Shown here: positions 5,155-40,571 of the stretch, piece after piece | Numbering within the stretch: the stretch's first letter is position 1 | Layout of the letters: each line of letters starts with the position of its first letter | Assembly: GCA_001642005.1 (NCBI GenBank) | Contig: LWCA01000192.1 | Coordinates: forward strand, 1-41,710 | Length of the DNA: 41,710 nt | DNA from: Intoshia linei | Lineage: Eukaryota; Animalia; Orthonectida | Direction of reading: 5' to 3' | The notes under the pieces: generated by a model | Told to the model about the DNA's origin: nothing | Seen by the model: only the letters and a program-made list of their open reading frames with translations | Databases searched by the model: none | Translations under genes and position numbers: made by a program

Positions 5155-8100
5155 CAGGTAAAAATTTTTACTTTTACAAATACTATGTATACATATTTGT
5201 ATATACTTGTATGTTAACACTTTAACACCCATGAAGTGTGCCTGTGGTATATTTTTTGTGTATATTTTTGTAACTATACTTTACATTTACTTCACTTTAC
5301 ACATATATTTGTACATTACTTTTTATCAAAATAAATTTAATTGAAGTATGTTATTGATTATTTGTTATAAAATCTTGAATATTGGACAAGTTTTATGTAT
5401 ACAACACAATCCAGGAAATGTAATTATGTTAACTTAGTATATGGATAAGAAAACAGGAAATGGACATTATATTAATGTTTAAATACATACAAAAATTTTA
5501 CAATGATATTTTTTACAGTAAAATAACTAACAAACATATTATTACATTCCATATAACCGGAATAAAAATTTCAATCGGAATAAGTGACGACTTCACGGTC
5601 AAAAAAGCATTTTAGTATTCATATTTTTTTTCAAAATATTTTATTAAAACAAAAAATGTGAAATAATTAACAATCAGAAAATTAAAAAAAAATTCTAATA
5701 GAGCTTATTCCAGTTGATATAAATACAAAAGTTCAACCCGAGAAATTCAAGCATTCCCGATGAAAAATAATTTTTAATATATTATCAACCAATATTTTGA
5801 TTAAAATAAAAATTTTAAATGTAAATATTGATCTTACAATTTAAAAAAAAAATGTGCAGTGAACGTCTACACATTTCCAATAAAGAAATATGGGTGGAAA
5901 TCTATATAATCCATTCCTTCGTAATTTTTATCATTGCTACGCAATTTTTAAATTTTAAATTATTATTTTTAAAACATTTTGAATAAAATTTAAATAGAAA
6001 CTAAACAACGAAACTAAAAACAACTTTGTTAATATCACTGTCAATGTCTATTAACTGTTAATGTCAACTTTTTTATATTTATTACAATCCAATGGAAATT
6101 TTGTAAAATTCGACTAAAATGTGTTTATAAAGCTAAGATTCGGTTAATTATTAATACATACAAAGTAATTGGTATTTTTAAGTATTTATTAAATTGGTAC
6201 TGAATATATATCATCACATTGAAAATGACAAAATAAATTTTTATTATTTTATTTTTTCTGGAATTTATGCTATTTATGACTATTTTTAGGTTGGACCGTT
6301 TTTTCTTTATTTTTAAATGTTAAACAAAAAATTAAGATGAAATAATTTACTTTAAAGTAAAAAGTAGTGTGATGTGATAGTTCCACCTGTAACAAATTTG
6401 GGAACCACTCCTTTAAAGGATTGATAATAGTGAATAGTAGGATTTTTAAGTTAGATTTTCAACGTGAATTTATTTTTTAAGTATAATAAAAATGTGCTCT
6501 CGGCAGAGCTAGGTCCTGTTTGTACGTAGTATGTAAATTTATTTTTTGGTAGTATAAAAATGTTCCCTCGGTAGAACTAGGCTACGAGTATAATAAAAAT
6601 GTGCCGTAGTTGTACTTAGTACATTACAGTCAACCTAGTTAATATATTATACATATACGTATAACGGTTAATTATAATTATAATGATTATATCTATTGTA
6701 TAAGGAATGTAATTATTTAGCTCGTAAATTTATATTATTTTTAAAATTTTTATAATTTTCTATTTATGATTTCAGCTAGTAATGATTAATATTTTTTTTA
6801 TTTGTCTTTTTCCCATTGCGCCTTTAATATTGTCAATATAAATATTTAATTAGGATTATCGTTATAATTCAATAATTTTAGTGTGTATTATAATTATACT
6901 TTTACATTTTTTAATAAATTAACATTTCGACTTATTTACTAAAAATTTTAAATATTTTTAATGCAAAGTTTTATTCATATTAACTGAAGGGTTAATAAGT
7001 ATGAAAATAATTTTTTATTTAATAGTTATTTGTAATGCAATCATTGAATCATTATTTTATTTTAAAATTTTTTAAAATACATGCATTACTTGAAATGATT
7101 TAGTCTGTAATAATTTTTAACTTAATTTTTATTATCTTATTACTGTTGAATATACAAATACAAATACATTATAAATAATATTCTAGTAGGTAATTGAAAT
7201 TTTGAAATTTTTTTATTGTAATGGTGTTGGATGATAATTTTTTGTTTATATAGTGCGACCATAAGTACGTTATTTTATAAAGGCACAGTGCCAATAACGT
7301 ACTTTTAACGTACTAAATAAAGTTATGAATTTAAATTTTATATTACAAATTATATATAACTTTTACTTATTTTTACGTATATATAGTATATATTTTAACA
7401 TAAACCATTCAAATTCAATATTTATCACCATTCTACTTTGTTATTAGTAAAACTCAAGTTAATTGGATCAACATACAAAAATGTATCACAATTTATAACA
7501 AAATAAATTTAATTAACAAGATAAATCGAGATAAAATGTTCAATGAATTTGTTACAGTTGATGTATGTTTAAAAAATTCTCCTACTATTCCTCCTTGGAA
7601 GGATTTGTGTGATAATATCGATACTAATGGATTCAAAAAATTAATCCAGTTTTATTATTCTCTAAATTGCTCAAATACATATATAGAAAGAGTATTTAGT
7701 GTTACTAATAATTATTGGACAGAACATAAATCCAACCTTAGCTTAAAAACATTAAAATCTGTCATTTTATTTCGAGAAAATTCAAAGGAAAAATGTACTA
7801 ATGTTTATAAAAATCTGTTAAACGACATTTAAATTTGTAAAAACATTAATTCTAGCAATAAATACATATTTCATTTTCAGCAATTACTCATGGTTATCAT
7901 AAACTTTATGTCTCAATTTAGTTATTGTCTAGTTACACAATTTTTTTTATATATTTTTTACATTTTCGTTTCTAAGCAATATTAGTACGTTAAAAATATG
8001 GTCGCACTAGTTTATATTAACGGTTTCACATTTTATCGTTGTATTTTGATTTTTTTAAAAAAATTATTTTGTATATTTTATTTATTTTTCTTGTTTTTTA

Positions 8101-10773
8101 TTTTTAAAATCACTTGAAAGTTATATAAAAAACATTTAAAAAATTATTTATCATCAAATGTTATACTAAAGGCTTTATTTAATAGCCATAAATAAACCAA
8201 CTCTTAAGGAAAATACCATTTTACCCATAGGGTTAATAAAACTGGATTTTTCTTTTTAGTGTTGGTAAAACTAGAACTTTCTATAAAGGGTTGGTAAATT
8301 AGATTTTTAGTAAAAATGGTTGGATTTTTGAAATTTTAGTAAAAATTTTTGAATGATTCATATATGAATCATTAGATGTGAAACCGTTAATAACATAAAT
8401 AATACATGGTAATTATGAAATCATAGAATGTAATTAAAATTATTTATGTACATTAGGGGTATTTCATTTGGACTTTATTGAAATAAAAGAAATTATCTGA
8501 CTAGGAATAATCAGTTTCTAAGTAAAAATGCTACAAAAATATAAAAAGTCAAATGTTTTTTTAGGGAGTTAATCAATTTCCAGCGTAAAATTTTTTTTGT
8601 CATAAAACGTTTTACCTTTCCAAATTTGCTATTTTTGTATCTTTTGTTGAGTCACACGTTAATGTTATATATGTTATGTAGTTAAAAAATTGTAAATTGG
8701 TTTAGTATTTTTTATGTAAAAGTGGTTTTAGTATATAAAACAATTATAATATACAAAAAAAATAATAATAATAAACAAAAATCAACATAAATTGTATATT
8801 TAATAAATTTTACAAAAAAAGTGGACTTTCGTAGATCAGTTAAATAGCAAAACTGTGGTCTAATAATTTAAGTAATGACTAAGAACTACCAAATGTAGCG
8901 ATACTGAAAAATACTTTTAAAAATTTTAATCCACACGGGACACCTTACTTTACATGTATATTTTTAGTGTGTAAATATCACTTTTAAATTCAATTTATAT
9001 ACACTTACTTTATAATCACTTTTTATATAAATATCAATGTAATATGACGTAATTATTTATAGTAAGTTGTAATATGATAAATTTTTTTTTATATTATTAT
9101 AATAAAATCCATCTGTTTTATACATTTAATTTAACAAAATAAATAAGAATAATATAAACAATAATAATTATTATACATTATAATATATCAATCGTTATTT
9201 TTATTATTTAGTTAGTAATACAATATTCCAAAAAATATTTAATTTAGTTTAATAATTGGATGAATAATGTTACAATTAAATTGAAAAATTGTATATAACT
9301 GGAGAGGCAAACATTCACCGGATTTCAATTTTTTCAGAACAAAATAGAGCAATATAAGATTTATTTCAATATAAATAAGCATTATCTCAATGAGATAAAC
9401 TATAGAGAGAATATTGTATTCATCCATCATAGTGATAATATATAATATTTATATTATAATTATAATAGCAATTTGTAAATATATAATTATTAATTCTAAT
9501 GAATTTTTCACATTTTTTTTTATTATATTTTATGTACAATTGTATCTCAAATATTTTTTTTATTTAGTCCGTAATATATAAACCATATTAATTAATATAC
9601 AGCATTGTTTATATAATAACTTGTTTGTTTTGTACTTTGTGCTTTAATTTCATATCCTATTATATTTATATGTATATAACATGATATGCAATATTTGCTT
9701 CTGTGTGTTACCGTTTATTTCAATAGCTACTAGTCTTAGAATTTTATAAAGTCAACATTTCAATTACAGTTTTTTCCGGGAGTCTTATCAAAATAAATTT
9801 CAACCATATAAACTCATATCTTACGGGTCAAAAAGCCCAATCATCCTTTTTTTGAAAATCAAACGAGTTCGAGAATTAAAAAATATATACTCTGATACGG
9901 ATTTTAAAATCATAAATATTATGTTAAATTTAAATTTAAAAAAATATATCTTCAGGGCCAAAACCACAAATTACCCGTTTTTTTAATGAAAACGGCCCTA
10001 GAATTTAAAAAAATTACAGGTGATACAGTTGTATCCTGTTAACAAACACACAAAAATTTCAATCTGAATAAGTGACGTCTTTAAGGTCAAAAAAACAGTT
10101 TATTAAATTAAATTTTCAACGTGAATTTATTTTTTTAGTTGAATAAAAATGTGCACTCGGCAGAGCTAGGTGCTGTTTGTACGTAGTACATAGATAAAAA
10201 TGATAATGGATAAAAAAAGACAAGACAGATATAAGAATAATCAAAAATGTAACATAATAGTCAACCTAGTTTAAAAAGTTAAAAGTTAGTTATATAAAAA
10301 ATTATATTTTAAAATGCATTCAAAGTTTTACTTTGTGTGTCACGGCAAAAACTACTGTATACTTTAATATTATGAACATTGTAATTAAATTATTAAATTA
10401 TTACAATGGTGTAAGCTCTCCTTGGTCAGGGTTAAATAATAAATTATTTTCAAAATTCTTTTTTTATTTTACAAATATACACTAAATTTAACAAATTAAA
10501 CGTTGATAAAAATTGAACAAAGATACCTAGAATGAAAATTAAAAAAGTAAGTTGTTTAGTTATATACGGTAATTAACATAATACTTTGTACACCATGATA
10601 TTTATGTATGTGAATGCACACTAGTTCGTATTTGTTGCTTATTAGCGTAAATTGAGTTGCATAATAGCTCGTGTCTCTGTGAACAACACTGTAATAAACC
10701 TGAGACAGTATTTAAGGTCCTAGAATAAACATCAACATTATAGCGATATTTTATTATAATCGTTATTTAGAAA
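5155..10773 (+). CDS. Micro-exon block 1 (APMFIFLVSFTIFLIYE)
   Basis: Exon starts: 5155 CAG, 6721 CTC, 6776 CTA, 6882 TGT, 7026 TTATTT, 7104 TCT, 7187 TAG, 9063 TAAGTT, 9212 TTA, 9469 CAATTT, 9568 TCC, 10560 TTATATACG, 10771 AAA; each is flanked by ag/gt. Confidence 0.7.
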
Positions 10774-13700: not shown

Positions 13701-16700
13701 GTAATAATTTGAATTGTTTTTATCATCATAAAATGTGAAATAAAATCTCATAAAACTACACTTGTAGAAATGATATTTACATTTTTAATATATATTTCTT
13801 AATATTTGATAAATGTACGTAAACGATATTAGATTTATTGAGTTATCATTTCGGATTACACTAATATTGAATATTTTATACATTTACTAAAAAAATTAAA
13901 TATATTATAAAAAGTTTGGCGACACACTAACGTGTCACGACTCTCGACAAACCGTTTGGAAATCACTGATCTAACGGGAGACAGTTTTATCAGAAATGTC
14001 ATTGACATTTATTTTTTTTGAGTTGTATTAAAATTATTTTATTTACATAAATTTCTTAATGTGATAGTTTTTTGATGTTTTATCATTTTTATTTATCATC
14101 AAAACTGGGAAATAACTACGTTATAGGTAAAAATACATATGGATGCATGTAAACGTGATAAAGTGGCATAGCAACTTAAAAATATGAACCCGTTTATTTA
14201 AAAAACTAAGTTCTTGGACATAATTATAATAGTTTATTAATTAGTATCATAACTATTCATTATGTTAAATTTACTCAATTTTTAACAGACAGTAATATTT
14301 TTTTATATTTATTATATTGTTATGTGTAGTATATATATGATATATATATAATGTTACAAAATAAATATAAAAATATATATATTAATGAGTATTTTTATTA
14401 TTTAACATAATTGACACATTTTAATTATAATTAGTTTGTAAATCATTTAATTAAATAGATATTTAAGATATAAAAAAATATTGTTTGTTATATAGTACGG
14501 TGTCACCTCTTTTTTAAATTTTGAGGTTGTGATGGGAAATTAGAACTAATTGTGTGTATTTTTAAAATATAAAATCTATTCCGCCATCAAAAACCTTAAC
14601 ACTACCTATTCGAGTTGCGTTTGTAAAAATGTTAAATAAAAATTAAACTGAACTTTATTTGTAGAAATAATTATATAATGACATATCCATGGTTATTGGT
14701 TGTTATGTGTAAGTCATCATATTTAATGATATCAATGATATAAATTTTTTTTAATATTTATTTGAAAGATTTTTTAAATATATTTCTATAAATCATTTAT
14801 TTTGGGTTTTAGAGATGGTTAAAATCCTCTAAAAATCTAATAAATACATACAGTAAAGTGTCCTTATATGCACACTATGTATAAGACTTATAGACAATAT
14901 AATAAGTACACACATCACACATGAAATTTAAATACAATGAAGTCTGCTTATAAGTTAAAGTGGCCAAAAAAATACGTACTACAGTCAAAATCTAACTTAA
15001 AGAAAATGGCAAAACGTTAAAATCGCATTTAACGAATATGTTAATATAGATATATTAGAAATGTGCTGCTACTGCTGCTGTCTACTTTCCCCTCGAATAT
15101 ATAGCGTTAAATATTGTTATTGTGAAGTATTCTTAATTTTAAATAAATTGACAGATTGATAACTAATTTTCCTTGATTCTTAGATAAGTGTGACACCCTA
15201 ATATACGGTGTATGTTATTAATAGTAAAAACATTGAAATAGTCCGTAATATAATTATTTATATGTATTTCTAATATATTATTTTTAAATTAACATGTAAA
15301 CAAATTAAATTACAATATGGAGATTAATTATTAATTTTTTAGTTAGTAGATCATTAATTTTTATAATTTTATGACATTGCATTCAATGTATGAATAGTAT
15401 TCATACAGATATATTGAATATATCATGTCACTGAATTGAGAGAGTTTAATTTCTTATAACTTAAGTATTCATTATATAGTTTGTAATTAGTATTGTTATA
15501 TATTGTATGATATGTATTATAATCTATTTTCAATCTTCGTTGGCTTAATTTACTGGATACAGTTACCTGTGACAAGGCGTTTATAATGTTGTACAGTAGA
15601 ATCTCCTTAATCTAAAGTGCAATTTTGATTCAAAACAAGGAATTCTTTAACTACAATGATTATTTACAATTTTTAATTTGACGTTTTTATGACTCTAATA
15701 AAAATAAATAAATATAAATGTATTCCAAATAACGTTTAACAGCAGCTAAATCATTATATATGGAATATCGAACATCGATACAATTTAATTCTCTATATAT
15801 AAGATTAACTAAATAAATCATAAGTAATATTCATTCTATGTAACACTAAATTTTAAATGAAAAAATTTCGGACTAATAAAATTAACAAATAATATAAAAT
15901 GTAAATAAAATAATTCAGATATTTTCAATTTCAATTATAAAATTCATATAAAAATGAACATGTCAATATTTAAAATGAAGAGTATTTCAATGAAATTGAC
16001 TTTAACAAAAATGTACTTTTTTATATAGTAACTATATGGAAAGAAATAATTAGGTTCACAACTAAGAATTATTCAATGAAATTGACTTTATATTAAAGAG
16101 ATTCTACTGTATTACGTAGTGGCTAGAAAAATACGTACTATCACTTTTAGTTTATTTGGAATAAATTTTTATTCTTCATCATGGATATGTAGTTTTGGCT
16201 TTACATTTAATACCAAATAAACTAAAATTGATAGTACGTATTTTTTCTGGTTACTTTATATCACGACTAAATCTTATTTTATTCAACTGATTTTACTATG
16301 GAATAGTTGCATTGTATACTATTTAATACAATTATATTTTAGTCAGTAAATTAGATTATAAGTAAAAATAAATATGTATATTGCTTATTATCAAATTTAT
16401 ATATAACATTTAGTAAGTAATATCTTTAATAATATTTACATATGTTTATTTTATTAAATATTATTGTATATATTATGTGGTCATTTTCACCGAAATATCA
16501 CGATGATATCTCCATATACAAGGAATATAGTAAATAAAATTTAAGATATTTTAAATAGCGAGTAAAAATAAAAATATATTTATACCAAATCTGAATAATT
16601 AATTTATTACCAAAAATAATGAATATATTGACTAAAAATTTATATAATATTATAGTAGGTATGATGAATTTTATTCATATGTTCCACAAGAAAAAAAGCT

Positions 16701-19700
16701 CTGCATTTTTATATATAAGATATTAAATAATTTAATAAACGTTTATATATTATAGCTAGTAATTTTGTATCTAAAATGTGCATTGTAGTTATTATAATTG
16801 TATACTATCTATAAATATCTTTAATTGAGATGCTCCATTTCCAAATTATTTTTACGGAATTTAGGCTAATTTTTACCAAATCGTTAGAATTGATCAAATA
16901 CATATTGTAGATAAATAAATTTTAGACTAAACTGAATTAGTATTGATTCATAGTTATGATTATTGATCATAGTTATGTAACTCATAGTTAACTCGAAAGA
17001 AACTAAAGTGTTAATACTTATTTTATCTTAATTCCCAAGTAAGTGTGAATTTTTGTTTATTATTTTTTATTAATCTATAAAATTCTATTTTTAATTTTTT
17101 TCTTCCAACCATTTTTCAATTGATTAAAAATTTACTATAAAATCCCGTTTTAAAATATTGTTAAAACCTATCATTTACTATTTGAAACATTAATGTATAT
17201 AATTAAAATGTTAAGAATATACTTTTAAAATTAATTTAATGTCATTTTATTTATTGTTAGTGGGTACATTTCATATACAATATAGTTATATTTTTTTTTT
17301 AAAATTATTTATATATAGTGTTTTACGATCTTTCAAGTCATGTTTGCATAGAGTCGAGTCATGTTTGCACTTAATGAAGTCAATACAGGACTTCATAATA
17401 TAGCAATTTTACATGTAAATTATTCCATTTAAAGTTTAATTTAAATTATATATTTTATTATTTCCATCTTAAACAAATATTTTATTTAAATATACAGGGA
17501 ACAAAACTTATTTTACTGTTTATATCATACATCAATTAATATTTGATTTAATTTGCAAATTAAAATAAACAAATTTCTTAATTACCTACCACCGTATTCG
17601 CCATTTTTGAATCCAATCGATGATGTATTCTCAGTATGGAAGAATATTATCAAAAGAGCGTGTGTCCATAAAGAAATGCAACTTAAAGAAAAAATAACCA
17701 ACTCATTTGAAGAAATATCATCCGTGCATTGTGATAGTTTTTATAGGAAAATGCTACCCTATTTGATAAAATGCGAACGACATGAAATTATTAATGATTA
17801 AACATTTCCTTGCTATTTTATTCTTAAATACGTAGTTAAAATCTATATAAAGTGTACTAATAGAAATGTTAATCATACATTAAAAATTTAAACTAATTAT
17901 CGAAAAATGTGCAATTAATAATTTTATCATGAAAATAAATTTTTACGAATATATTGTGAAAGATTAATTTAACTTGTGCTTTTTAAGAACGACTTAAAAG
18001 TTTGTTAAACAAAAAATATCTAATAAATTTTGGTATATAATGGAATCTCTGTATTGACCATATTCATTGAAAAGATGACTTGAAAGATCGTAAAATTCTA
18101 TATTATGGGATTTTAAATTATACAATATAGCCAGTAAATATAAAAAATAAATCAATATTAAACACAATGACGTTATTAATTTACCCAATAATCCATGTAT
18201 TATGCAACTACCCGTATACTAATTTATTTAGAATGTAAATTTTATTATATTTAACGGTCACTAACGGAAACCTCCATTGTTATATAAAAAATGTTAAAGG
18301 GTATTAATCTTATATACTTCCAAATATGTTCATTTATTTTTTGAATAGTTAGTAAATAACACTAATCATCAATCTCGTAAAATATACTAACTATTATTAC
18401 AATTATATATTTCTCGCGTTAAAACTTATAAGTCAAATTTTATTTTCGTAAGGAAACTACGCGATTTAATGAAAATTATTGAATTTTGTAGAATAATACA
18501 TATAATATAATATGTATAATCTAAACATTAATTTATCAGATTGTAAATTTAAATTAATGTACATTGTACAATGTACTCCAATAATACATATTTTACGTTA
18601 TAGTATGAATACAATTTTACAGGTCTAAACTATTCTTAATCCTTTGTTGACGAATGTATGAAATTTAATACAGTGCATCTTTTATAAATTTACGGAGTAC
18701 CAGAACTTTAAAATTCATAATATTAAGTGGATATCATAAAGTTAAATGTTAGCGGAATAATTAAAATTTAATTGTATCCAAAAATCACTTAATAAATACG
18801 CCAATCATTAATAAAGACCTTGATTTTGTAAATATTAACTAAAAATATATAATCTTTATTAACATACAATGAATTGGAAATATTAAATAAAAAAAAATAC
18901 TGTATTGTTAGAAAGATTTAAATTGTATTTTCCATTAAACACAATTTTGAAAATGATGTATTAATGATATTAAAAATTTGGTATTAGGTATTTATCAAAT
19001 TTTATACATTCGTCATCTACAATATAAAATAAACTTTAAATAACGTTGATAAGATTTAATTTACAACAAAATTTTTATTACATTTTATATATTTTTCAAT
19101 AATAATTTATTTTGATAAAAATGACATACCATTAAAAAAATTATATAAAAAATAGTGGAAAAAAGGGAAAGGACCATTAATAGAGTTATCTATCCATAAA
19201 AACAAAGAAAATAAAAACTATGCAATCCTATAGATCATTTCAATTGTTTTTTGACTCATGACATGTTTGAAGAGACAGTGAAACAGTCAATTTATTATAC
19301 TACACAATGTGGTTCAATGTTTGTAGCCACTGTTGCAGAAATATACATTTTTTTGGAATCATTTTAAAAATGGGTGTTATCCCATTGCCGCGCTATAGAA
19401 TGTATTGGTCGGCCGAATTTACCGTTGGCAATATATCTCATTGTATGACCCGGGATCGGTTCGAAGACATAAAAAAATACTTGCATTTTGCAAAAAATGC
19501 ATAGCTAGTGACAGACAAAAATAATCCAAAAATTGACCGCTTATATAAAATATCTAAAATTCTTGAAATGTTCAGAAATGCATGTTTTACTTCACCCCTA
19601 AATTCAAATGATGGCATAATGAATAATTTTTATATATATTCGAGAAATCCACGAAAAGTAGACAAATCTTGTGGAAATAATTCTGGGGACGTAGTGGTAC

Positions 19701-28700: not shown

Positions 28701-31700
28701 CATCCACAAAGTTTTCTACGATAAAAAAAAAAAAAAAAAAANNNNNNNNNNNNNNNNAAAAAATCAATTTATGAAATTTTTACCCATATCTCTTTTTGAA
28801 AACGAGTAGACGTTTAATGCAATTTTTTTTAATTGTAGGATGAATATTTACATATTCATTATTAATTTTTATCATGCCATTTGAAAAATATAGTTTGATA
28901 ATATATTAAAAGTTATTTTACATCGGGAATACGTATATTTCTGAGATTAAATTTTTGTATCTTTATCAACTGGACTAAGCTATATCAGATCAATCTTCTT
29001 TTTTTAATTGTAGGACTGTTAATTATTTCAAATTGTTTGTTTTAATAAAATAGTTTCGAAATAAAAAAAATGAATACTAAAGTGGCTTTTTGACCTCTCT
29101 TCTCTTGATCTTTTTAAAATTCTAGGATTATTTTCATTGTTTAAAAAAAGCGTAATCTTGGTTTTGATATAAGTATTTAATTAATATCGTAGTCGGTAAT
29201 TCACTTAATTAAATTACTGTAGTGTACTGTCATAATTATCAATTTAAATTTTATTTAGCTTGTTATGTGAATAATTATTCATTTCTTTTATAAAAGATGG
29301 TATTTTATTTTTTAAATTAGTTCAATTCAATTTAATATTATATACTACATGTAGTCGTGTGTAAATTTATTTGAAATTTATTGTAATTATGAATAGGGTG
29401 TTCAGCTGATATTATTACACAAGCTGTTAATTAATCATTTTAGTCTGTAATTATTTTTTTATTTGTACATTATACGATAAAGTAGAATCTACATTGTAAA
29501 TGTAGATCAACGGTCTCTAATAAATTTGTTTTGTGATATCAACACAAAAATCAAATTTTTACGCCTATTATTTTTCTCGAACATTTTAAATTTTATTTTT
29601 GTGATATTTTTCATACTTTTTTAAAAAAATTCTCGATAAAATTAAAGGTTAATTACATAGATAATTGCGTATGTTTAATATTCATGATTTAATTTTTTAT
29701 TTCGTTAGTTGGTATTTATGCATAACAACTTTAACATATTTAATAAATAACTCTTAATATTTAATATTTTAGCTTGTAAATTTAAAGTTAATATAATAAT
29801 GTTTTGTACATTGTGCAATGTACAGTGTAATACAGATATACAGATTTTGTATACTAATTTTAAAAAAGCAGTTGGTAACATTTTTATTAGCTATTAAAAT
29901 TATAAAAATTAATGATATAATATTTTATGACATGGTATAATAAATTTTAAAATAATAGTGAGTAATGTTTTATTATTAAATTAATATAATTATTACTACT
30001 AAATGTTAAATTATAATTAAAAATTAAATACACACATAAACTGTATGTATAATTAAACTTTACCTATTATATTTCAGTCGGTAATTTTTTAATTTTATTT
30101 CATATTTATTAAATTAATGAAAAATTAAATTATATAAACCGAAATAATAATAATAATAAATTATTTTATATAAAAAAAATTATAGAAGGTAAAATCATCG
30201 TCTTTAATCATTGGATCCGCAGATCCTACCGTTTGCTATAAGCTTTTTATTAATGTAAAAAGTTTATTTAAAATATGTTGGAATATTTAAGTTTGGATTT
30301 AAATTTAAATTTGTAATTTTTACATGTCATTTAAAGTTGAAATCTGGATCTGAAAATAATTGTATTTCATACAGAATTTTCGTGAGTCAAGTTTATGTAA
30401 AAACTAAGTGGGAAGTCTTTGTATAATTTACCAGTACATTAGATTTAATTGTTAACATTGTTTTATTTTAGAAATTTGTAATTTTTATTTTTAGATTTTG
30501 TACCTAGTGTCGAACATACCGTACCCTCGACCCTCCTCGGATGGATAATTTTATTTTGTAAAATGTAAAAATGGAGCCTGATTTTACCAAAACTATCCTT
30601 GAATACCATAACCATTTTGTTTGTTACGTTTAAAATGTTAACCTTATAGCTCTATAGAGGTGGCTAAGGGCTATATAACACTACAAATTGTTTGTGATTT
30701 TTTTGTTAGGCATATTTTTCATTTTTAATGGCCGACAGCTGGCTAGATTCGCTTCTATTGTACCTTATGTTTTATTATTTAAAATAGTGAAGATAAGTAA
30801 ATATCACCATATGATTATTATATTTATCCAGAATTATGTGCACATATAAATTATTTTTTCAGTTATAATTTTAATTATGCATAATCAAATTTATACTTTA
30901 AGTCGATATTCATAAATTACGGTGGAACTTATAATATTATTCTTAATTTAGTTCAAAGTAAGTTTTGAAATTCTATTTTAATTATAAGCAGTCATTTATT
31001 ATATTTTAATATTTAGAAATATTAACTAAAGGTACACTAATTGCATTTTATATAAATTTATAATTTTTTAGTGGATGATAATAAAGGTAAATATAAATTT
31101 AATGATATGTAATACACATTGTGTATGATAAAGTGTTTAAATAATTTGAAACATTTTGTCATTTCCAATGACTCAATTACGCCGAGAACGTGACAGAGTC
31201 AATGCTAATTTGTTTTATAACTATGTAAAACTGTCCTCTTAAAATCAAATTATTGTTGTATTAATATATTTATTTTAGTAGGTAGTGATTATACATTTTA
31301 ATTTATGGCTTGTGTGTTTAAACCAGTGTTTCCCAACCCATTTTGCGTTATCGGCCATTTTTTAGAATTTTATTAAATATATTATTTTTATCGCCAAGTA
31401 AAAATAAAATTTTAATTTTGAAAGTAACGTTATATTATAGTATATATTTTATGCATGAACAAATAGATTTATTTTTTTTTCAACTAAATCAATTTTTCAC
31501 CAACAGTATGATCTTTTCCGCCTTTTGCGATAAGATGCCATTAATCCATTTTTATTTGATCATAAAATTATAATAATTGTAAAAATTTTATATTTATCGT
31601 CATATCTTTAGTATATTATAACTAGGGCGATTATTTTTTTAACTAGGGCAAATTTTGATATGTTCATAGACATCAAATTAAATCAACAACCTTAAAAACT

Positions 31701-34700
31701 TACATTTTCGAGTTTAATTCCTAAATTTCCAGTTTTTTAAAAATGAAAAAAGTCACAGAATTTTATAAAATATAAATTCTGGGTAGTTTTTAAAATCGTG
31801 AGTATCATAAATTACAACTTCAAAAACTTAAAATCAAATAAAAAGTGGCCCTCGATATAGCAACTGCTGTTTGCAGTATTGAATCTATTGTACTCCGAGG
31901 TACCTCTTCTGGAGTCTAGGCAAAAAATTTTTAAAATGGGAGCCTCATTTTTTCAAATTAAATATTAAAAAAAAATATCTTTGAATATTATAATTATTTT
32001 GTGTGTTAAATTTAAAATATAAAGTCAAGATCTTTAGAGAGGTTGGTAAGTACAATATGACACAAGCCATCGTTTTCGAAACAAATTTTTTATGGGCCTA
32101 CTTTTCATTTTGTAGGTGACCTCGAATTGGATAGGTTCGGATCAGGCTGTTTGTGCCAAGTACATAACAGTAAACTTTACTAGAGTTAGCGTGACTAAAC
32201 CAAGCTATTAATATTAATAATATTGTTCAAAATTAATATTAAATCAATCTAAAGTATTTATAATTCCAATCAATTCGTGAAATTTCCCTGGTCATTTCAA
32301 AATATCGCAGATTCCATCAAATTTTCGATGACCCACAAGTGGGTCTAAACCCACGATTGGGAAACACTGGTTTAGGGTACGTAATGATTCAATTAAATTA
32401 GTATACTAATTGGTAATTGTAGTTACTGAAAAATCAATACTTGTATCAATTCTATTTTAGAAAACTTGGAAAACGGTAAATTAAATTTTCTGTAAATTAC
32501 TATAAATTATGTCAAATATTTCATATTTCAATTTAGAAAGTTGGGATAACGGTAATAATATTAATTTATAACATAAAATTGAGATGAATGTGATTTTAAT
32601 CGTCCTGTATTCCAGTAAAATCATATTTCCGATCACTAGTTCTACTTGAGAAATAAAGAATTGAGAGGGCCTAGAAATTTAAAAATTAATGATGTATAAT
32701 ATACATCATATATCAATCATACATCAATATGCTTAAGATTTAATTACAAAGTGTTGGTCAAAGATATGTAATTCATACCCTAAACTCGAAAAAAAAGCTA
32801 TTGTATTTTTCTTACTTTTCGCATGAACGTATTAAAATATATAAATGTATATGAATGTGGATTTTACTCTAGGGAAATTTTTTTAGCCATATTTTGAAGG
32901 GGGTTTTTAAAGATATTTTTTTAACCATATTTTCAAGTGGTATTTTGTGGAAATTGAAGAAGTCACTTATTCAGATTGAAATTTTTTATGTGTCTTAACA
33001 GGATATAACTACTATCTGCAATTTTTTTTAAATTAGGGTTGTTTTCATTTTAAAAAAAAAAAATGTGGGGTTTTGATCGTAAAAATTATCATTAAATTAA
33101 ATCGTTAAATATACATTTATTGACCAAATTTTTAATATTTAATTTAGGCATGAATGAAATACGTAAATATAATAATCATTATAATAATAACAACGTTGAC
33201 TTTTATGTACTACATAGTACGTACAAACATCACCTAGCTCTGACGAGGGCACATTTTTATTCTACCAAAAAAAGAAATTCACGTTGAAAATCTATTTAAA
33301 AATCCTACTATTCACTATTATCTATCCTTTAAATGAGTTGTTTCCAAATTTGTTTCAGGTAAAACCTGGTTAGAATTGACTTTATTCTATAATAACGAAA
33401 AATATATATTCTTAAATACATATTTTTCAAAATGACAATATTAGATAGAATTTTTCTAATGGAATAAAAATACCTAAAATGATTAATATATCAATTTAGA
33501 GGAAATTAACGAAAGTAAATATATAAATTTATGATATAAATTGAAATTAATCTAAACTTGTCAAATATGTCAAAAAAATCATATCAAAACTCACAACTTT
33601 TGAGTCAGATGACGAATTCGGTAGTGAAAATTTTTTGAACGTTTTAAATCGATTGTATGTTTTATCCACCTAATAAATATATTACATTGCCCTAAATCTG
33701 ATTTATAATTTTTAGAGGTGTTTTTCTAATAATATTTTTAAATCACACCCAACATTTCTGATTCGTGATTGTTAAAATTTTTACATTGGAAACTTTGAGA
33801 ATGTGTTTATACAAATTTTATAGGAAAATAAAAAATTTTAACCAATTAAAGAGAAAATACTGTATTTTTAGTTTCAAACTACTTACAAAACATTACCGCA
33901 GGATTTTTTCTTTAGCATATATTACATAATTAATAAATTTAGATATAATTTTGATTAGTAAATTATCATAACTTGATATTGTATATAATATTTTATAAAG
34001 TATATTTAATAGAATAATTATACAATCATTTTTATTATATTTAAATTATTCTTATATTAATTTTAAAAGACTGTAATAATTCAATTTGATTTTCGTGATA
34101 ATTATTATTACTATGAATGCTCAATTTAACAAACACAACGTTACCTGAATTTTATGTTAATTTAAAATTTTAAAGAAGTTTAAGTACATTCCCAAATTTT
34201 AAAAAAGTTAAGGTATGTCTGTTTAATGTATCCTTTTATTTAAAATAATTAAAAATCCATTAGAGATACATTAATTGATAAGGATAAAGGTTATAATATA
34301 TAATAATATATTATAACCTCATAACAATAGTAGAGTCTTAAAGAAAAGAGATATAATACTTTTTTATTTTTTTTTACTTTTATACTTTTATAATATTTAT
34401 TTTTAATGAAGAGTTAAAAAAGGGATGAAGGTTAAACTTTATCCCGCTAATGTTCTCAAAATAAACATGTTTTTAGATTATTGTTTACAGAACATTACAA
34501 CTTACTCTATATTTTATTAAATCAAAAAAAAATCTAATAATATATTATTATCTATCATCCCTGCGAAAATAAATATTTTATAACCGTTGGTTGATGTTTC
34601 GAAAAATCATGAATATTAAAAGATTTTTTATATCATTTTCAATTTGAAATTTAAAGCTTTTGTTTTATTACTAAAAACTTGGCTTGGTCATAAAGTATTT

Positions 34701-37700
34701 TCCATCAAATGTATAATATTGTCATTGAAAATAATATAAATTACTATACTGGGGTGACTGTATTAATATAATAAAAACAAATGCTCCTAAAATGGAACAA
34801 TGGAGGTTTCCCAGTAAGTTTTTACAATTATGTTTACATTTACAATTATTTTGAATTTGAAAAATGTAATATTTCCGTACAAAATTATCAAATGTTTGTG
34901 TTGATTAAATTGAGGGTTGACTGTATTTATCTAAACTAATTAATTATGAAAAATCGTAAAATTCAGATACTAATTTAAGACACATAGCAAGTAAAATTAT
35001 ATTTAATATTATAAAATTTATGTATGATGAGACATCATTTGATGCGTAAAATTTCATTAAGTCGTAAAAAATTGGAATGTATGCTTTCTTGTGCGCGTAA
35101 ACATTGGATTTAATTGCATGGTTCAAAAATAAAAAAAATTTATTATTAATAATTTTGTACGAATATATTTTTACTGAGTTATACAATGGCAAAAGTGTAT
35201 CCATAATAATCTATATTATTGATAGATTATATATAAAAGCAAACTTTGATAAAATTACCATAGGAATAGAGAAGTCAATAAGTCAATGGCTTAATTTTCT
35301 ATACATCTTAAACTTATTGATGAAAAATTTGTTTTTTTATTACTTTTAATACTTTTTATTATTGCTTTTTTGGCTTTCTTTGGCTAATACATAATTGGTA
35401 TTTTTAAGTATTTATTAAATTGTACTGAATATATATTATCACTATAGGAGACTAAAAAGAGCACTTTTGAAATGATAAAACACGTATAAAAATAATAAAA
35501 TGTATGATACTAATTTTAATGATCATTCATTATAGCTAAGTGCATTATCTTTATGACATAATCGTGCTAAAACTGTGTTTTTTATATTTTAATTATATTT
35601 GAAATTGTTAAAAAACATTCATCAATGACATGTCATATCATTTTAGTGTAAAATAATATTTTGATCGCTTTACTCGTTTGTGTCTACTCTGATTATCACA
35701 TTGAAAATGACAAAATAGGTTTTTATAATTTTATTTTTCTGTTATTTATGCATAATTAATAAATATAATAATATAATAAATCAAATTATCAAATTTTCTA
35801 TGCCCAAAAATGAACAAATCAGACTCGTTAGTGCTTAACGCCATTTTATTTATTACATGTACTATATGTAATAATAATATGTAATAAGTATGTATGTTTA
35901 ATTACATTAAATATTTTTATTTGTCGTTCCAATTTTACAGTCTTCGGTTTTTGGAAACACTACCACGTACTGTACATTTATTCACTTTTAAAACAAATTG
36001 TTTTGTATTATTCTTTTTTAATCGTACTTTTTTATAGAAAAAGTTGCATTAAGTCAATTTTTTTTTAGAGTCAATAAAAAATTTGCCCTAATTATAATAT
36101 AATTATATATTGTTTTCACTGTTTAAATTACCAATATTATCAATTTATGTTATCTTTCTTAACGACTACAAACAGCATATCAAAATATTATTTGTATTTT
36201 CACGCTTTTAATTAATTAATTAGAGTTTTTTATACATAGTATATGAAATAGTACAGATATACAAAGTATATAAATGTATATAAAAATAACAATTGTTTTT
36301 ATTATAATTATATTATTTAAATATCCTTATTAAAGTCAGTAAGTTGTAAATAAAGTTAAGTTATAGTACAATCAATTACATTGATACATTTAGAAAGTAA
36401 ATATTTTGAAATTCATACAAATACGTATGCAAGTATATATAAACCAGTAAGTGTATGATCAAATTAAAAATTTAAATATATATTCTAGTTAGTAATAAAT
36501 TAAAATACATCAATAAATTGAACATTATATCAATTACATACATACAGTGCGCGTAATAAACATAGGAAACCCCGATTTATATTATTTTTTGGTCTATTAA
36601 CATTAATTTTCATGAATATTTCATCTCCATTAAAAAAGGAATTTAAAAAGTACGCTTGTTGATACCATTATTTTTCTTCTGCCACCTTTATATGAAAAGT
36701 TATCACACAAATCGCTAATTAGCCGCGCAATAAACATAGGCACCTTAAATTAAAATAATTTGTCTTTTCTCCTTTATTGACCACAACTTCTAGGCATCTA
36801 TTTTTCATTGTCAATACTAACTTTTCAATAGTATCTATATGGATATTTTTCCATTCTGTCAATATTATTTGCGTCAGCTGATACCTATTTTTAAATTGCC
36901 TGCCATTTTTGTATAAGGACCTTGCCAAAATTCCCCATAAGTTTTCTATTGGGTTAAGGTCAGGAGACTTCGATGGCCAGTTTATTACATTAACAGAATG
37001 TTCTTCAAACCATGTTTTAACAATACAAGAAGTGTGGATTGGAGCATTATCTTGTTGAAAAATGTAATTTGTACCATAATGAAAGTGAGCAAATGGAAGT
37101 AGAAATTCAAATAAGGTAAAAATATAATCCTCAGAGTTTTGATTTTTATTCAGAATCGCCAATTTGGATTTGCCTTTCTATGAAAATGCTCCCCAGACTA
37201 TTACCGATCCACCTCCACTTTGCCGCGTAAAGTAAACTTCTTTTTCCTTTCGTAGATCATGCCAATAAAACTGGAATTCATCAGGACCGTTTGATCAAAT
37301 CAGTCCAAATTGAATTTTTTTTTATCCGAGAATATCACAGAATTTTAATGTGTATCCAAATCCACGTATTTTCTGACAAAAAAAATCTTATTTTCTTTAT
37401 GAGCTTTTGAAAGGACCAGAGCATGATGTCGTTTACTCCATTGAAGGTGGGAACAATTACTTATTACCTGTTGAACGGTACAGAGCTTCACGTCTAATTC
37501 TGCATTTTGCATAATGTTTCTAGCTGTATATTGACCGCTTAAAGCCTCACGTATAATATGAAACTCCGTTCTTGAAGTAAGTTTCTTGGGCCTACCTGGA
37601 CTTTTTGACTTTCCATATGACTCTGGGTTGTGTATAAACCTCGATACCACATTTCTAGACCTTTTAATCTGCTTAGCAATGTATTTGTGTGATTTATTTA

Positions 37701-40571
37701 TTGTTTTTAATGCCATAATTTGACCTTTTTCAAAATCAGTTAAAAATACAACAAGCGTACTTTTTAATTCCTTTTTTAATAGAAATGAAATATTCATTAA
37801 AATTAATGTTAATAGACCAAAAAATAATATAAATCGGGGTGTCCTATGTTTATTGCGCGCAATGTATATTAAAAATATGTATAAATATAATAATATGTAT
37901 AAAATGGTTTTAATATGTGTTGTTACGATTCTAAGGAATCGTAAATCACTGAAATCGCTCGATGTTAGGAACCCGGAATCAGTAAAAAAATAACGCTTAC
38001 GTTTCTTTGGGAAATACGATAGTAATTAGTTTAAAAAAACTAAGTTTTTTTAAAATTAGATAAACTTGCTCAATATTATTTTTTTAATTTATTATGTATT
38101 TATATCATAAATAGTACATAACTTGGCATATAATGAGGAATTAAATTACATACTATTATAATTATGTATATATAATAAATAATATATATAAATAATAATT
38201 ATGTTATTATCTTATATATAAAATGAAGAGCTTTTTTTCCTGTCTAATGTATATACTATCTACAATGTATATTATACATACAATTATATTATTTTTATAA
38301 GTATACTATAAAATTTTTATTGTTAAAATACCATATAGTGCGTAATTTTTAAACTTATTTTATACATATAGTGGATCCACTATTAACCGCTGATTCCGTT
38401 ATTCACTAAAAAAACTAGTACTTTTGATTTTTAGTTTTTTTGTATAAAATTTTTACTTTTAATTTTTATTTTTTTTATATAAAACCTCCGTTATTCGCCA
38501 GTTTCCACTGTTCGATAAAAAATTTTTCAAATTAATCGAAAAAATAAAATAAATTGTATTTGCAAACCGCGAGTATATAGAAAAAATGTTAATATATCAT
38601 GATCTTTAAATTTGAAGAATTATATAACTTGTGATATGTGAATAAAATACCGTTTTCACTATTAACAACAGTAAAATTCATCTTTATAATGATATAAATA
38701 TGTATACTAAATTGATAAACATTTTCATAAAAACTGGGTCTATTATTCTCCAAAAATTGTGCATCCAGATTTAGGCAAATTCTGAAGGCTTCACTAAACA
38801 GACTAATTCGTCAATAATTATCTATAGTCTCTATATCAGTGCTTCCCAAACTATTTATGTTCATGGCGCAAAAAAATAAGTAAAAAATTGCGGCGCACTG
38901 TATACATTGCCTATATTTCTATCTTTAAAAATGTGTATTATCACAGTTGTTCTCAAACGTTTTTAATAAGGGTTCCCGTCAAATGCAATAATTATTAATT
39001 TTTTTATGATGAAAATTTTGAAAGATGATAATAATTACCGAAAAAAAATATTTTACACTTTGTTTTAGTGTATTTATAAAACGTATGTACTTTATGCATT
39101 AAAATTTAATGATTAGATAGACATTTTTATAATTTTAAATTATAGATCGTTAAAATAAATAATCAAAATTTAAAAAAAAACACAGATTCAGGTGCCGGCG
39201 CACCATTTGGAAGCACTGCTCCATATATACATATATACTGTATACTTTATAATATAGTACAGAGTTTATATTATATAATTATAATTTATATACGTTTTAT
39301 TTAGGATTAGGTATTTTATTTATTTTAAATAAATTCTCATACAATTGACAATCATCTTATATGTAGTTAGTAATTAAAAATATGTTACAATTTATTATAC
39401 GTTTTTAAAAAAAATGTAATTACATTGGACTACGATTATGTCAATGTACCATGAATTGAAATTGAATTTGAATGAGCCATTAAAAAATGGTTATGTGCTG
39501 GAAATCAATTTAAATCGTTTTCCATTTGGCAAAACGTTTTAAAAGTGATTATACTGTGTAAATTTTAAAGGAAGCTTTTGTAAGTTTTCACATATAAATA
39601 AATTTTTTATTTTGGGGTGTTTACCTGCACAAATAATCGTCAACTAAACATATTTTTCAAGTAACTTTCTATGAAAGAGGAGGGAATATCAATTTAATTG
39701 AATTAAGATTGCATAAAATAAAAATCGACTGTCAAAGGTTTATTTTTCATTTTTTTCGTAGTCTTTTGGAGAAATTTGATATTATATTTCTGTATTATAG
39801 TTAGTAATTTAATATATTTTAAAATTAATAACATTAGTATGTAACTAAATTATAATATTATATTTATATTATATTTATTATTATTATAAATGTAGATGGT
39901 TATTAAATTAATATTTATAATAATATTTATTTATGAAAAATGATAATAATCAAAAACAGTTGGTATATTATTTATGTTAACAGATTTAATTATGTATTAC
40001 AATTTATAATTATAATTAAAAAAGTATCACTGTCAAGTTACACCTTTCATGATTAAACATTCTGTTCATCATTATTCATTATACCCTACCATAAAAAATA
40101 GCACAATTAAAATTTTTATTATATTCAAATTTAGAAAATTTAACATATTATTAAGATTTCATGATTAAATAAAAATTCAACCTTTGAACTTTCGGAACAT
40201 AAAAAAATATAATTTAATTATAAATATATAAAAATATTATTTAATTAACTAAAATTATGAATAAATCTGTATTATATTGAATATGTAAATATGTATTAAG
40301 TTTCTAGAAATTTTATAACATATACGTATAAAAAATTACATTTTTAAAGGAAGTAATAAAAACTATAATTATAAATTATTTAAAATATACCAGACAAGTT
40401 TTATTTTTAAATATTAGTATGTAAATTGCTCAATTTCATTTAATGATATATTAATATTATATGTGAAAATACTTTTAGTCAGTAATATTTTGTTTATATT
40501 ATTATATTATATTATAATATAAATATTTACTTATAAGTTTTGGATATATCATAATAATTATTAAATAGTTT
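5155..40571 (+). CDS. Putative micro-exon gene (~105 symmetric phase-1 exons of 3/6/9/15 nt) encoding a multi-hydrophobic-segment protein of unknown family; 5' and 3' ends not defined
   Basis: Repeated (t/c/a)ag-NNN-gta(a) motifs on the + strand with AT-rich upstream tracts. The concatenation of ~468 nt is open in phase 1 and has stops in phases 0 and 2. The product has alternating hydrophobic and charged blocks. Confidence 0.8.
6330..6639 (+). repeat. 3' fragment of Helitron-like dispersed family
   Basis: Shares ttagattttcaacgtgaatttatttt...ctcggcagagctagg...acagtcaacctagt with the other copies; has an internal partial duplication. Confidence 0.65.
7251..8009 (+). mobile_element. Internally deleted hAT transposon with C-terminal dimerisation-domain ORF (7536-7832)
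   Basis: TIR tagtgcgaccata / tatggtcgcacta; flanking direct repeat gtttata(t); ORF motif CSNTYIERVFS..W...KSNLSLKTL. Confidence 0.85.
9640..10270 (+). repeat. Copy of Helitron-like dispersed family
   Basis: Collinear with 10880-11461 and with the reverse complement of 20013-21090; ends tcaacctagt. Confidence 0.7.
10880..11461 (+). repeat. Copy of Helitron-like dispersed family
   Basis: Ends in the hairpin ctaggtgctgtttgtac-gta-gtacataacagtcaacctag followed by T; no TIR or TSD seen. Confidence 0.7.
11752..18542 (+). CDS. Micro-exon block 2 (NKNIFLIFITIAMAKFN)
   Basis: 3-nt exons: 11752 ATA, 12785 AGA, 14289 ACA, 14435 TTT, 15242 TCC, 15343 TTA, 15480 TTT, 16343 TCA, 16414 TAA, 16559 CGA, 16656 TAG, 16756 CTA, 17261 TGG, 18131 CCA, 18232 AAT, 18349 TTA, 18540 ATT. 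Confidence 0.7.
12043..12716. mobile_element. hAT MITE
   Basis: TIR caggcgtgtcaaact / agtttgacatgactg; subterminal gcggccc motifs; TSD ctgtacat/ctgtaaat. Confidence 0.8.
15594..16109. mobile_element. Tc1/mariner-pogo type MITE
   Basis: TIR cagtagaatctccttaat / attaaagagattctactg with TA on both sides. Confidence 0.8.
16117..16257. mobile_element. Small foldback MITE
   Basis: ~40-bp inverted repeat agaaaaatacgtactatcacttttagtttatttgg / ccaaataaactaaaattgatagtacgtattttttct; a related terminus lies at ~14957. Confidence 0.65.
17316..18100 (+). mobile_element. Deleted IS630/Tc1/mariner element with DDE C-terminal fragment (17553-17801)
   Basis: TIR tagtgttttacgatctttcaagtcat / atgacttgaaagatcgtaaaattcta, TA TSD; motif YLPPYSPFLNPIDDVFSVWK. 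Confidence 0.88.
19200..19945 (+). pseudogene. piggyBac-type transposase relic
   Basis: Motifs YRMYWS, MTRDRFEDIKKYLHF, DRLYKI, FDNYFNS, GTMRKNR (~19808) and KWHDN (~19927), interrupted by stops and frameshifts. Confidence 0.88.
20013..21090 (-). repeat. Longest copy of Helitron-like family (reverse orientation)
   Basis: Begins actaggttgac (reverse complement of gtcaacctagt). It contains segments matching ~500-870, ~5530-5930, ~28760-29165 and ~32960-33360. Confidence 0.7.
21277..24899 (+). CDS. Micro-exon block 3 (YPIHDT[NVEVV]IIRVMFAV[VKY]AA)
   Basis: 21277 ATCCGA, 21404 TTCATG, 21912 ATA, 21997 CCA, [22770 15 nt, uncertain], 22910 TAA, 23158 TTC, 23338 GAG, 23433 TTA, 23526 TGT, 23661 TTG, 23733 CTG, 23800 TTG, [24389 9 nt, uncertain], 24761 CTG, 24897 CTT. 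Confidence 0.7.
25025..25642 (+). mobile_element. Non-autonomous hAT element
   Basis: TIR tagagtgtttaactt / aagttgaacacacta; TSD gtctatac/atctatac; remnant ASVERLFSA at ~25190. Confidence 0.8.
26056..28582 (+). CDS. Micro-exon block 4 (YDVFYNDRKHIELAYFAFEIMTSIKKK)
   Basis: 26056 ACG, 26150 ATG, 26228 TGT, 26315 TTTATA, 26385 ACG, 26468 ACAGAAAAC, 26532 ATA, 26581 TTG, 26654 AAC, 26739 TTG, 26787 CAT, 27176 ACT, 27233 TTG, 27306 CAT, 27416 TTG, 27480 AAATTATGA, 27960 CTA, 28102 GCA, 28222 TAA, 28503 AAAAGA, 28580 AAA. Confidence 0.8.
26844..27107. mobile_element. Degenerate hAT-like MITE
   Basis: Imperfect TIR cagggtggtccaaa / tttggatcactg; TSD unclear. Confidence 0.45.
28743..28757. other. 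Assembly gap (N run) after poly-A
   Basis: Run of n; additional micro-exons could be missing here. Confidence 0.99.
29193..34072 (+). CDS. Micro-exon block 5 (IAYVVFFAFVIEEILKIIQKILTKVDDNKVENLENESWDNEEINENIILIN)
   Basis: 29193 TCG, 29259 CTT, 29297 ATG, 29355 TCGTGT, 29444 TCT, 29709 TTG, 29773 CTT, 29872 TTG, 29959 TGA, 30078 TCG, 30186 AAG, 30472 AAATTT, 30788 TGAAGATAA, 30952 TTCAAA; 15-nt exons at 31017 and 31072; 31279 TAG; 15-nt exons at 32461, 32537, 33500 and 33943; 34070 ACT. Confidence 0.8.
31324..32369. mobile_element. hAT non-autonomous element
   Basis: TIR cagtgtttcccaa / ttgggaaacactg; partial TSD gttta. Confidence 0.7.
36336..40571 (+). CDS. Micro-exon block 6 (FKIIMRLVRSFFIYVGIFI)
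   Basis: 36336 TCA, 36394 AAA, 36448 TAA (weak donor), 36489 TTA, 38339 TGC, 39305 GATTAG, 39367 TTA, 39571 GAAGCTTTT, 39801 TTA, 39838 TAT, 39896 ATG, 39960 TTG, 40350 GAA, 40418 TAT, 40479 TCA, 40569 TTT. Confidence 0.72.
36545..37864 (-). mobile_element. Near full-length Tc1 (DD34E) transposon, transposase disrupted
   Basis: ~115-bp TIRs beginning cagtgcgcgtaataaacatagga, TA TSD. ORF 37345-37797 has HTH and GRPKKLT; VIFSD and VWGAFS lie between the ORFs; ORF 36719-37162 has QQDNAPIH..SPDLNPIENLW, with 34 residues between D and E. Frameshifts and one stop are present. Confidence 0.95.
38837..39218. mobile_element. hAT MITE
   Basis: TIR cagtgcttcccaaa / tttggaagcactg; TSD ctctatat/ctccatat. 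Confidence 0.8.

Follow-up and report, generated by a model that had tools for sequence, protein, structure and literature searches.

The forward strand of contig LWCA01000192.1 from the orthonectid Intoshia linei (assembly GCA_001642005.1) carries, between positions 5155 and 40571, a long array of splice-acceptor and splice-donor motifs that stand exactly three nucleotides apart. We propose that this array represents one or more spliced, translated micro-exon genes in which nearly every codon would be split by an intron, and we put the probability of this reading at roughly 0.7. The whole contig (C2698; 41,710 nt, 77% AT), part of a 41.6-Mb assembly, was analyzed and is referred to here as the window. 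The proposal draws on the array itself, its restriction to one strand, micro-exon sizes that are exclusively multiples of three (3n), identity with the splice consensus of the genome, and avoidance of stop codons across introns.

The strict motif TAG-NNN-GTAA occurs 59 times on the forward strand of the window and once on the reverse strand, and all 59 forward copies lie within 5155-40571. For the relaxed motif AG-NNN-GTA, the counts are 99 and 22, while other spacings between AG and GTA (k = 0-24) give 11 to 34 matches; about 75 three-nucleotide sites exceed this background. The first base of the triplet is G at only 1 of the 59 strict sites. Within the array, 55 spacers measure ≤200 nt (median 92, minimum 34) and 11 are longer than 1 kb, with most falling between 45 and 150 nt. 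Sequences flanking the 99 relaxed sites are not copies of one another. These results confirmed that a one-strand array of closely spaced splice-site-like pairs is present at the locus. A preliminary description, made by reading the sequence without database searches, had counted 53 strict motifs and approximately 81 three-nucleotide candidates; its observation was borne out, with the first figure rising to 59 and the second settling near 75. It had also listed about 24 exons of 6, 9, or 15 nt. Strict candidates of these sizes number 9, 7, and 6 over a background of 0-4 per spacing, so the enrichment holds but the number does not, being partly made up of chance matches. The k = 3 peak with lesser excesses at 6, 9, and 15, and the contrast between strands, were both as that description had predicted.

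To place these counts in context, we searched the whole assembly. TAG-NNN-GTAA has 5982 matches (3186 + 2796 on the two strands), or about 3 per 41.7 kb per strand, and a reversed control motif is more common (5088 + 5050). Because the motif is not enriched genome-wide, the locus is enriched about 20-fold over the genome mean, and on one strand only. Motif pairs 30-150 nt apart number 399 across the genome, compared with 155 for the control. Chance arising from AT-rich composition, or an artefact of assembly, could be suspected in a contig that is 77% AT and contains a gap. However, the counts of 59 and 1 on the two strands, the 20-fold enrichment, and the genome-wide occurrence of three motifs in succession (131 versus 5 for the control) oppose this explanation, and the window shares its repeat families with contigs that carry ordinary genes, which speaks against an artefact. 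We consider its probability to be close to nil. The gap itself lies within a long poly(A) run and probably reflects a homopolymer whose length was not resolved, not a junction between unrelated pieces. Motif density and strand do not change across it, and since all exons are 3n, the frame argument developed below is independent of the gap.

The sizes of the putative exons are equally restricted. When acceptor-donor pairs from six arrays (97.6 kb) were pooled, an excess was found solely at k = 3 (165 versus 4 antisense), 6 (20), 9 (12), and 15 (12), and no exon length that is not a multiple of three rose above background.

Judged by their sequence, the TAG and GTAA at the locus are the normal intron ends of this genome. 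Ordinary myosin genes of I. linei have introns of 33-90 nt that start with GTAA or GTAT and end with TAG, and the published median intron length for the species is 57 bp (PMC6543705). In the window, the introns between 26056 and 26787 are 45-90 nt long, and all begin with GTA and finish with AG. Flanks of 175 strict sites, pooled from seven loci, have 16% GC, are poor in G upstream of the AG, and are enriched in T at positions -5 and -7, while the triplet positions have 30% GC, near the value of coding sequence. GTAA without a preceding AG-NNN is scarcer on the sense strand (404 versus 514). Alternatively, the motif could be a polar DNA signal, such as a site of protein binding or recombination, whose likeness to an acceptor and a donor in succession is accidental, and it is short enough for this to be considered. 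Yet it is identical to the genome's intron ends, is preceded by an acceptor-like, G-poor and T-rich tract, and is spaced at intron sizes. Moreover, 3n-only spacers and a frame that runs across introns would be meaningless for a DNA-binding site. A signal of this kind is therefore very improbable.

We then examined the reading frame of the joined exons. Under a fixed rule (strict sites, k = 3, 6, 9, or 15, outside repeats), the join comprises 79 exons and 372 nt and contains 12, 12, and 1 stops in the three frames. The lone stop in the open frame comes from a 9-nt match at 24252, beside a repeat, which is probably a chance match. Shuffling of exon order, a control suggested in the preliminary description, gave P = 0.0028. 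That description had reported a phase-1 join with no stop at all; the frame it identified stood, whereas complete absence of stops depends on which candidates are kept. In the six 15-nt exons (31072 and the five at 32461-33943), none of the 24 internal codons is a stop in the phase-1 frame, compared with 3 of 30 and 6 of 24 in the other frames.

Stop avoidance also extends across introns. At 7 loci, neighboring strict micro-exons lying 30-200 nt apart formed 103 pairs, and we took as junction codon the final base of the upstream exon plus the two leading bases of the downstream one. No stop was found among the 103 codons, compared with 6.7 expected from permutation of partners within loci (P = 0.00025). 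A preceding exon ended in T in 0 of 21 cases before exons starting with AA, AG, or GA and in 34 of 82 cases otherwise (Fisher P = 0.0001); with the window left out, the corresponding values were 0 of 16 and 21 of 50 (P = 0.0008). The other junction frame contained 11 stops versus 7 expected, the other two frames were at chance level, and lag-2, reversed-order, and within-exon controls were flat. Six hold-out loci, fetched later, yielded no stop in 34 strict pairs or in 53 looser pairs (for the latter, P = 0.036). Together, the original set and the hold-outs contain 0 stops in 103 + 34 junction codons, where about 7.8 would be expected. Bases on either side of an intron are jointly constrained only if they are joined and read. 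The avoidance of stops therefore fits exons that are spliced together and translated, with all introns in phase 1.

It is also conceivable that the array is spliced but non-coding. The locus would then be a long non-coding RNA or a spacer resembling an untranslated region, with 3 nt as the smallest workable gap between splice sites and the 6-, 9-, and 15-nt exons as triplets merged by precise intron loss. Such merging would by itself yield 3n sizes, composition by itself reduces stops in the open frame, and neither a domain nor a first or last exon was recognized. However, stop avoidance across introns exceeds the effect of composition and is confined to a single frame, the 15-nt exons have no internal stop codon in this frame either, and an excess at 15 nt without one at 12 nt is ill-suited to simple merging. 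We regard this explanation as unlikely.

For the translated micro-exon gene as the preliminary description had drawn it, the consecutive 3-nt exons and the symmetric phase-1 introns are upheld by the k = 3 peak, the strand bias, the shuffle, and stop avoidance. Its exact exon list, its 468-nt open reading frame (ORF), and its assignment to one gene were not established; one gene and several are indistinguishable in the window.

The locus is a member of a genome-wide class and not a singular oddity. At least 21 other, non-satellite contigs bear arrays, each on one strand, and all 11 contigs sampled were alike in pattern (Table 1). In addition, a 145-bp satellite occurs on more than 30 small contigs and across at least 8 kb of contig C2280, and carries an acceptor, three nucleotides, and a donor at its unit boundary, which reads ...TTTTAATAG-NNN-GTAAAAAATA... 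We aligned 64 units over 142 columns without using the motif as a condition. Positions 1 and 3 of the triplet are the two most variable of the 142 columns (entropy 1.55 and 1.80; mean 0.52), position 2 is slightly above the mean (0.73), the donor is 94-100% conserved, and the acceptor G is 80% conserved. The same pattern of variability is seen in a contiguous 5.2 kb of C2280, where the three frames contain 7, 1, and 0 stops over 33 triplets, the single stop-free frame being phase 1. Read in phase 1, the variable bases of the satellite occupy the first and second codon positions, which determine the residue encoded, whereas the wobble base, like the intron, is conserved. T is present in 7 of 94 cases where TAA would form, while donors elsewhere have T at this place in 31%.

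The satellite offers another explanation, in which a repeat with splice-like unit ends expanded and then decayed, leaving an unexpressed locus that is a dead gene or junk. The living satellite does share the TAG-NNN-GTAA junction, the arrays are full of transposons, and in-frame stops appear among the looser candidates. Nevertheless, the introns of the window resemble neither the satellite nor each other, yet about 80 perfect 7-base motifs persist on one strand, although neutral decay would remove motifs at the rate at which introns diverge. Stop avoidance likewise points to recent or ongoing selection. A decayed relic is, in our estimation, a distinctly unlikely account of the locus.

If the micro-exon gene reading is followed, the arrays probably grew by tandem duplication of a unit of one intron plus 3 nt, as the satellite still shows. 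We rejected recent duplication of this kind within the arrays, as adjacent introns have no detectable similarity and are no more alike than distant ones. We also rejected the possibility that the window introns are old copies of the 145-bp satellite, since an nhmmer search with the unit found nothing in the window or in the other arrays. Because adjacent introns share no similarity, the splice motifs either outlived complete divergence of the introns or arose independently; if the arrays came from duplication of the unit, the motifs survived saturating divergence, given that the introns match neither the satellite nor their neighbors. More broadly, the 20 or more dispersed arrays and the 145-bp "intron satellite" could form one class of protein genes in which essentially every codon is split by a phase-1 intron and which grow residue by residue through tandem duplication of the intron-plus-3-nt unit. 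We advance this extension tentatively and at less than even odds.

Beyond the array itself, we infer transcription, the order of splicing, translation, and the features of a protein as follows. One transcription unit or more would contain short, ordinary GTAA...TAG introns, mostly 45-150 nt and some swollen by transposons, alternating with 3-nt exons and a few of 6, 9, or 15 nt. Splice sites would pair across each short intron (intron definition). The footprint of U1 spans positions -3 to +6, and U1 bound to a donor would cover the entire 3-nt exon and the preceding AG. Because of this overlap, two adjacent introns could not be recognized simultaneously. Introns would instead be removed successively, so that the exon upstream gains a triplet at every round, in a ratchet akin to recursive splicing. 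As every intron would be in phase 1, codons would be split 1 + 2 across exons, the last base of one joining the first two of the next.

Translation of the spliced product would yield no fewer than 125-170 residues, hydrophobic toward both ends of the protein and acidic or polar in between. In the first cluster (6721-7189), an ATG is assembled in the open frame across the intron 6776/6882 and is followed by a hydrophobic run; this ATG may be the start codon. The open-frame translation of the stretch 26056-26787, within the cleanest cluster, reads DVFYNDRKHIELA. Exons 32461-33957 encode the acidic or polar stretch in the phase-1 frame. Two of them, 32461-32475 and 32537-32551, agree at about two thirds of their positions, a likeness suggesting that an exon was duplicated locally along with its intron. 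The 3' end of the gene may lie beyond the contig. As a separate observation, two 2016 sequencing runs of the same sample (X2 and X3) hold 2% and 0% of the words of the locus despite 23 and 7 million contig letters. Both are labelled "DNA?" and may be RNA libraries.

Several points weigh against a spliced and translated micro-exon gene. The case for coding is statistical. The footprint of U1 exceeds the length of a 3-nt exon, and we know of no case in which more than a few such tiny exons follow one another. Inspection of 4200-7560 and 39700-41710 revealed neither a conventional first or terminal exon nor a signal-peptide exon or poly(A) signal, and no terminal exon was recognized between the array and the contig end at 41710. 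Under a looser rule, the open frame of the window contains 5 stops; the looser site set gives 4 stops in 185 adjacent pairs, and the other arrays, when distant pairs are included, give a noisier 8 stops in 169 codons. Because the looser rule brings in these in-frame stops, some candidates must be false or some exons decaying. The composition of the triplets could stem partly from splice-site preference instead of coding. The arrays sit in transposon-rich stretches devoid of ordinary genes, and no 3-nt exon was found in the ordinary conserved (myosin) gene that we examined.

Table 1. Micro-exons, repeats, and related features. Micro-exons are given by their start coordinates and are 3 nt long unless another size is stated; a point marks features without a strand.
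Feature	Position or contig	Strand	Details
Whole array	5155..40571	+	80 strict sites (TAG-N3/6/9/15-GTAA) and 17 looser 3-nt sites ([CT]AG-NNN-GTA[AT]), all +
Micro-exon cluster	6721..7189	+	6721, 6776, 6882, 7026 (6 nt), 7104, 7187
Micro-exons	8427..10773	+	8427, 8968, 9063 (6 nt), 9212, 9469 (6 nt), 9568, 10560 (9 nt), 10625, 10771; repeat 9673-10199 intronic
Micro-exons	14289..18542	+	14289, 14435, 15242, 15480, 16235, 16343, 16414, 16559, 16656, 16756, 18131, 18232, 18349, 18540
Micro-exons	21912..24899	+	21912, 21997, 22388 (9 nt), 22910, 23158, 23433, 23526, 23661, 23733, 24897
Micro-exons, cleanest cluster (15 exons)	25715..27418	+	25715, 26056, 26150, 26228, 26315 (6 nt), 26385, 26468 (9 nt), 26532, 26581, 26654, 26739, 26787, 27176, 27306, 27416
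Micro-exons	27960..28652	+	27960, 28102, 28222, 28503 (6 nt), 28580, 28650
Micro-exons (13 exons)	29193..31086	+	29193, 29355 (6 nt), 29444, 29709, 29773, 29872, 29959, 30078, 30186, 30472 (6 nt), 30788 (9 nt), 30952 (6 nt), 31072 (15 nt)
Micro-exons (five 15-nt exons)	32461..33957	+	32461, 32537, 33148, 33500, 33943
Micro-exons, sparser 3' part	34988..40571	+	34988, 36394, 36489, 38339, 39367, 39801, 39838, 39960, 40418, 40479, 40569
Assembly gap	28742-28757	.	In intron between exons 28650 and 29193; abuts repeat 28758-29095
Interspersed repeat	5564..6643	.	Copies elsewhere in window and on other contigs
Further interspersed repeats	9673-10199, 10925-11489, 12061-12712, 23902-24206, 25193-25642, 28758-29095, 33165-33366	.	
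Tc1-type transposase fragment (DDE_3)	17547-17798	+	Intronic in array
Transposon debris	19271..21076	.	Occupies 2.5-kb gap between exons 19399 and 21912
piggyBac-type transposase fragments (DDE_Tnp_1_7)	19271-19771	+	Intronic
Interspersed repeat	19997-21076	.	In gap 19399/21912
Tc1/mariner remnant	36535..37870	-	Intronic, antisense to array
Array contigs	C261, C516, C610, C629, C715, C970, C1017, C1037, C1164, C1321, C1398, C1428, C1522, C1593, C1697, C1857, C1861, C2186, C2227, C2237, C2263	One strand	Motif pattern
Contigs sampled for pattern	C516, C610, C970, C1017, C1037, C1428, C1522, C1593, C1697, C1857, C17		11 of 11 alike
145-bp satellite, 86% AT	C282, C285, C666, C870, C997, C1000, C1503, C1741, C2280		Acceptor-3 nt-donor at unit boundary

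Repeats and transposon debris make up about 9.2 kb of the window and contain just 5 of the 99 relaxed motif matches. They fall between motifs rather than on them, and account for the long gaps between clusters. The Tc1/mariner remnant has inverted ends of about 120 bp (36542-36661 and 37749-37867) that are 94% alike, and its transposase is broken, with HTH_Tnp_Tc3_1 and DDE_3 in two separate ORFs; contig C610 holds a copy that is 87% identical. The repeats at 9673-10199 and 10925-11489 are direct copies of an approximately 520-bp repeat, 84% identical and 1.2 kb apart, with inverted copies at 20645-21067 and on other contigs. An AT-rich, low-complexity run (23387-23432) stands directly upstream of the micro-exon at 23433. 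ORFs of at least 70 amino acids in and around the arrays encode transposase fragments or nothing, and a search for contigs encoding one of the window ORFs returned no record.

The myosin gene used for comparison (contig C1207, 2340-3700, reverse strand) appears intact and has an intron of about 1.1 kb that carries the repeat family found at 41349-41508 of the window. Because this bona fide gene tolerates a repeat-bearing intron of such length, introns swollen by repeats are plausible in the array as well. The exon that follows this intron is normal and encodes a stretch rich in lysine and glycine that, read by eye, is a candidate for myosin loop 2. Candidate 3-nt exons in the gene were rejected as chance matches inside or beside normal exons. 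We also rejected hairpin-type (mirtron) introns in the arrays, as the mean folding z-score over 40 introns was -0.26, and transcription-type GC skew, which was lost after motifs and repeats were masked, with only a slight excess of T over A persisting. No Rfam family was detected in the window or in four other loci.

Among known systems, the micro-exon genes (MEGs) described in Schistosoma and in further parasitic flatworms come nearest, with isolated 3-nt exons in second place, and the locus would be an extreme new form of the former. MEGs likewise belong to parasite genomes, place most of their coding sequence in very short, symmetric 3n exons, have small products that are hydrophobic or charged, and are hard to annotate. 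Their published exons range from 3 to 81 bp (PMC10526429). The locus shares their predominance of 3n micro-exons (80 strict exons, with an excess only at 3, 6, 9, and 15 nt) and a single frame that is open through them. In contrast to MEGs, around three quarters of its exons are exactly 3 nt, dozens of these are consecutive, and almost every codon would be split; its introns are short (45-150 nt), whereas those of MEGs reach 5 kb. The micro-exons of MEGs lie between conventional exons, the 5' one with a signal peptide, and at the locus no such exon was recognized in 4200-7560 or 39700-41710. MEG transcripts also vary through the skipping of micro-exons, and MEG products are secreted. Because the host lineage is orthonectid, any likeness to MEGs would be convergent. 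Isolated 3-nt exons, such as micro-Ex8 of Drosophila homothorax (PMC7392893) and the 3-bp exon that human RPS24 has beside exons of 18 and 22 bp (PMC12207440), prove that the spliceosome is able to include an exon of this size. These are single, often alternative exons in normal genes, while at the locus they are the rule and occur in runs of at least 10.

Other systems are alike in part. Ratchet points in recursive splicing also place a donor directly after an acceptor and remove introns stepwise from 5' to 3', but their exon has zero length (AG|GT), recreates a 5' splice site, and leaves nothing in the mRNA, whereas here 3 nt would be kept in frame at each step; at k = 0, the six pooled arrays have 8 sense and 6 antisense matches, which is no enrichment. 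The tandem intron arrays of snoRNA host genes such as SNORD115/116 (PMC3413130) and mirtron clusters contain many similar introns separated by short exons, a description that formally fits the 145-bp satellite too. Unlike theirs, the introns of the locus contain neither conserved nor structured RNA, and the signs of selection are on the exons. Introner-type elements mass-produce introns with their own splice ends, and the satellite unit behaves as a copyable intron; however, the window introns copy no family, the satellite is tandem rather than dispersed, and no terminal repeats or target-site duplications were seen. In the literature that we searched, there was no account of 3-nt exons in runs, let alone of runs dozens long with short introns and an intron satellite feeding them.

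If confirmed with RNA, the locus would have the most fragmented protein-coding architecture described, with dozens of exons in runs, each smaller than the site of U1. Splicing would be forced to be sequential and intron-defined, which would make the locus a natural test bed for minimum exon size and would raise the question of where exon-junction complexes sit when junctions are 3 nt apart. Such genes would also expose a blind spot in annotation, as ORF finders, gene predictors based on hidden Markov models, and spliced aligners cannot recover them, and parasite secretomes and the gene counts of small genomes may be incomplete. Repeats could build coding sequence in a simple way, as the satellite suggests. 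Should the reading of the whole class be true, the parasite I. linei would possess a repeat-driven generator of hypervariable proteins that works at single-residue resolution and escapes present annotation.

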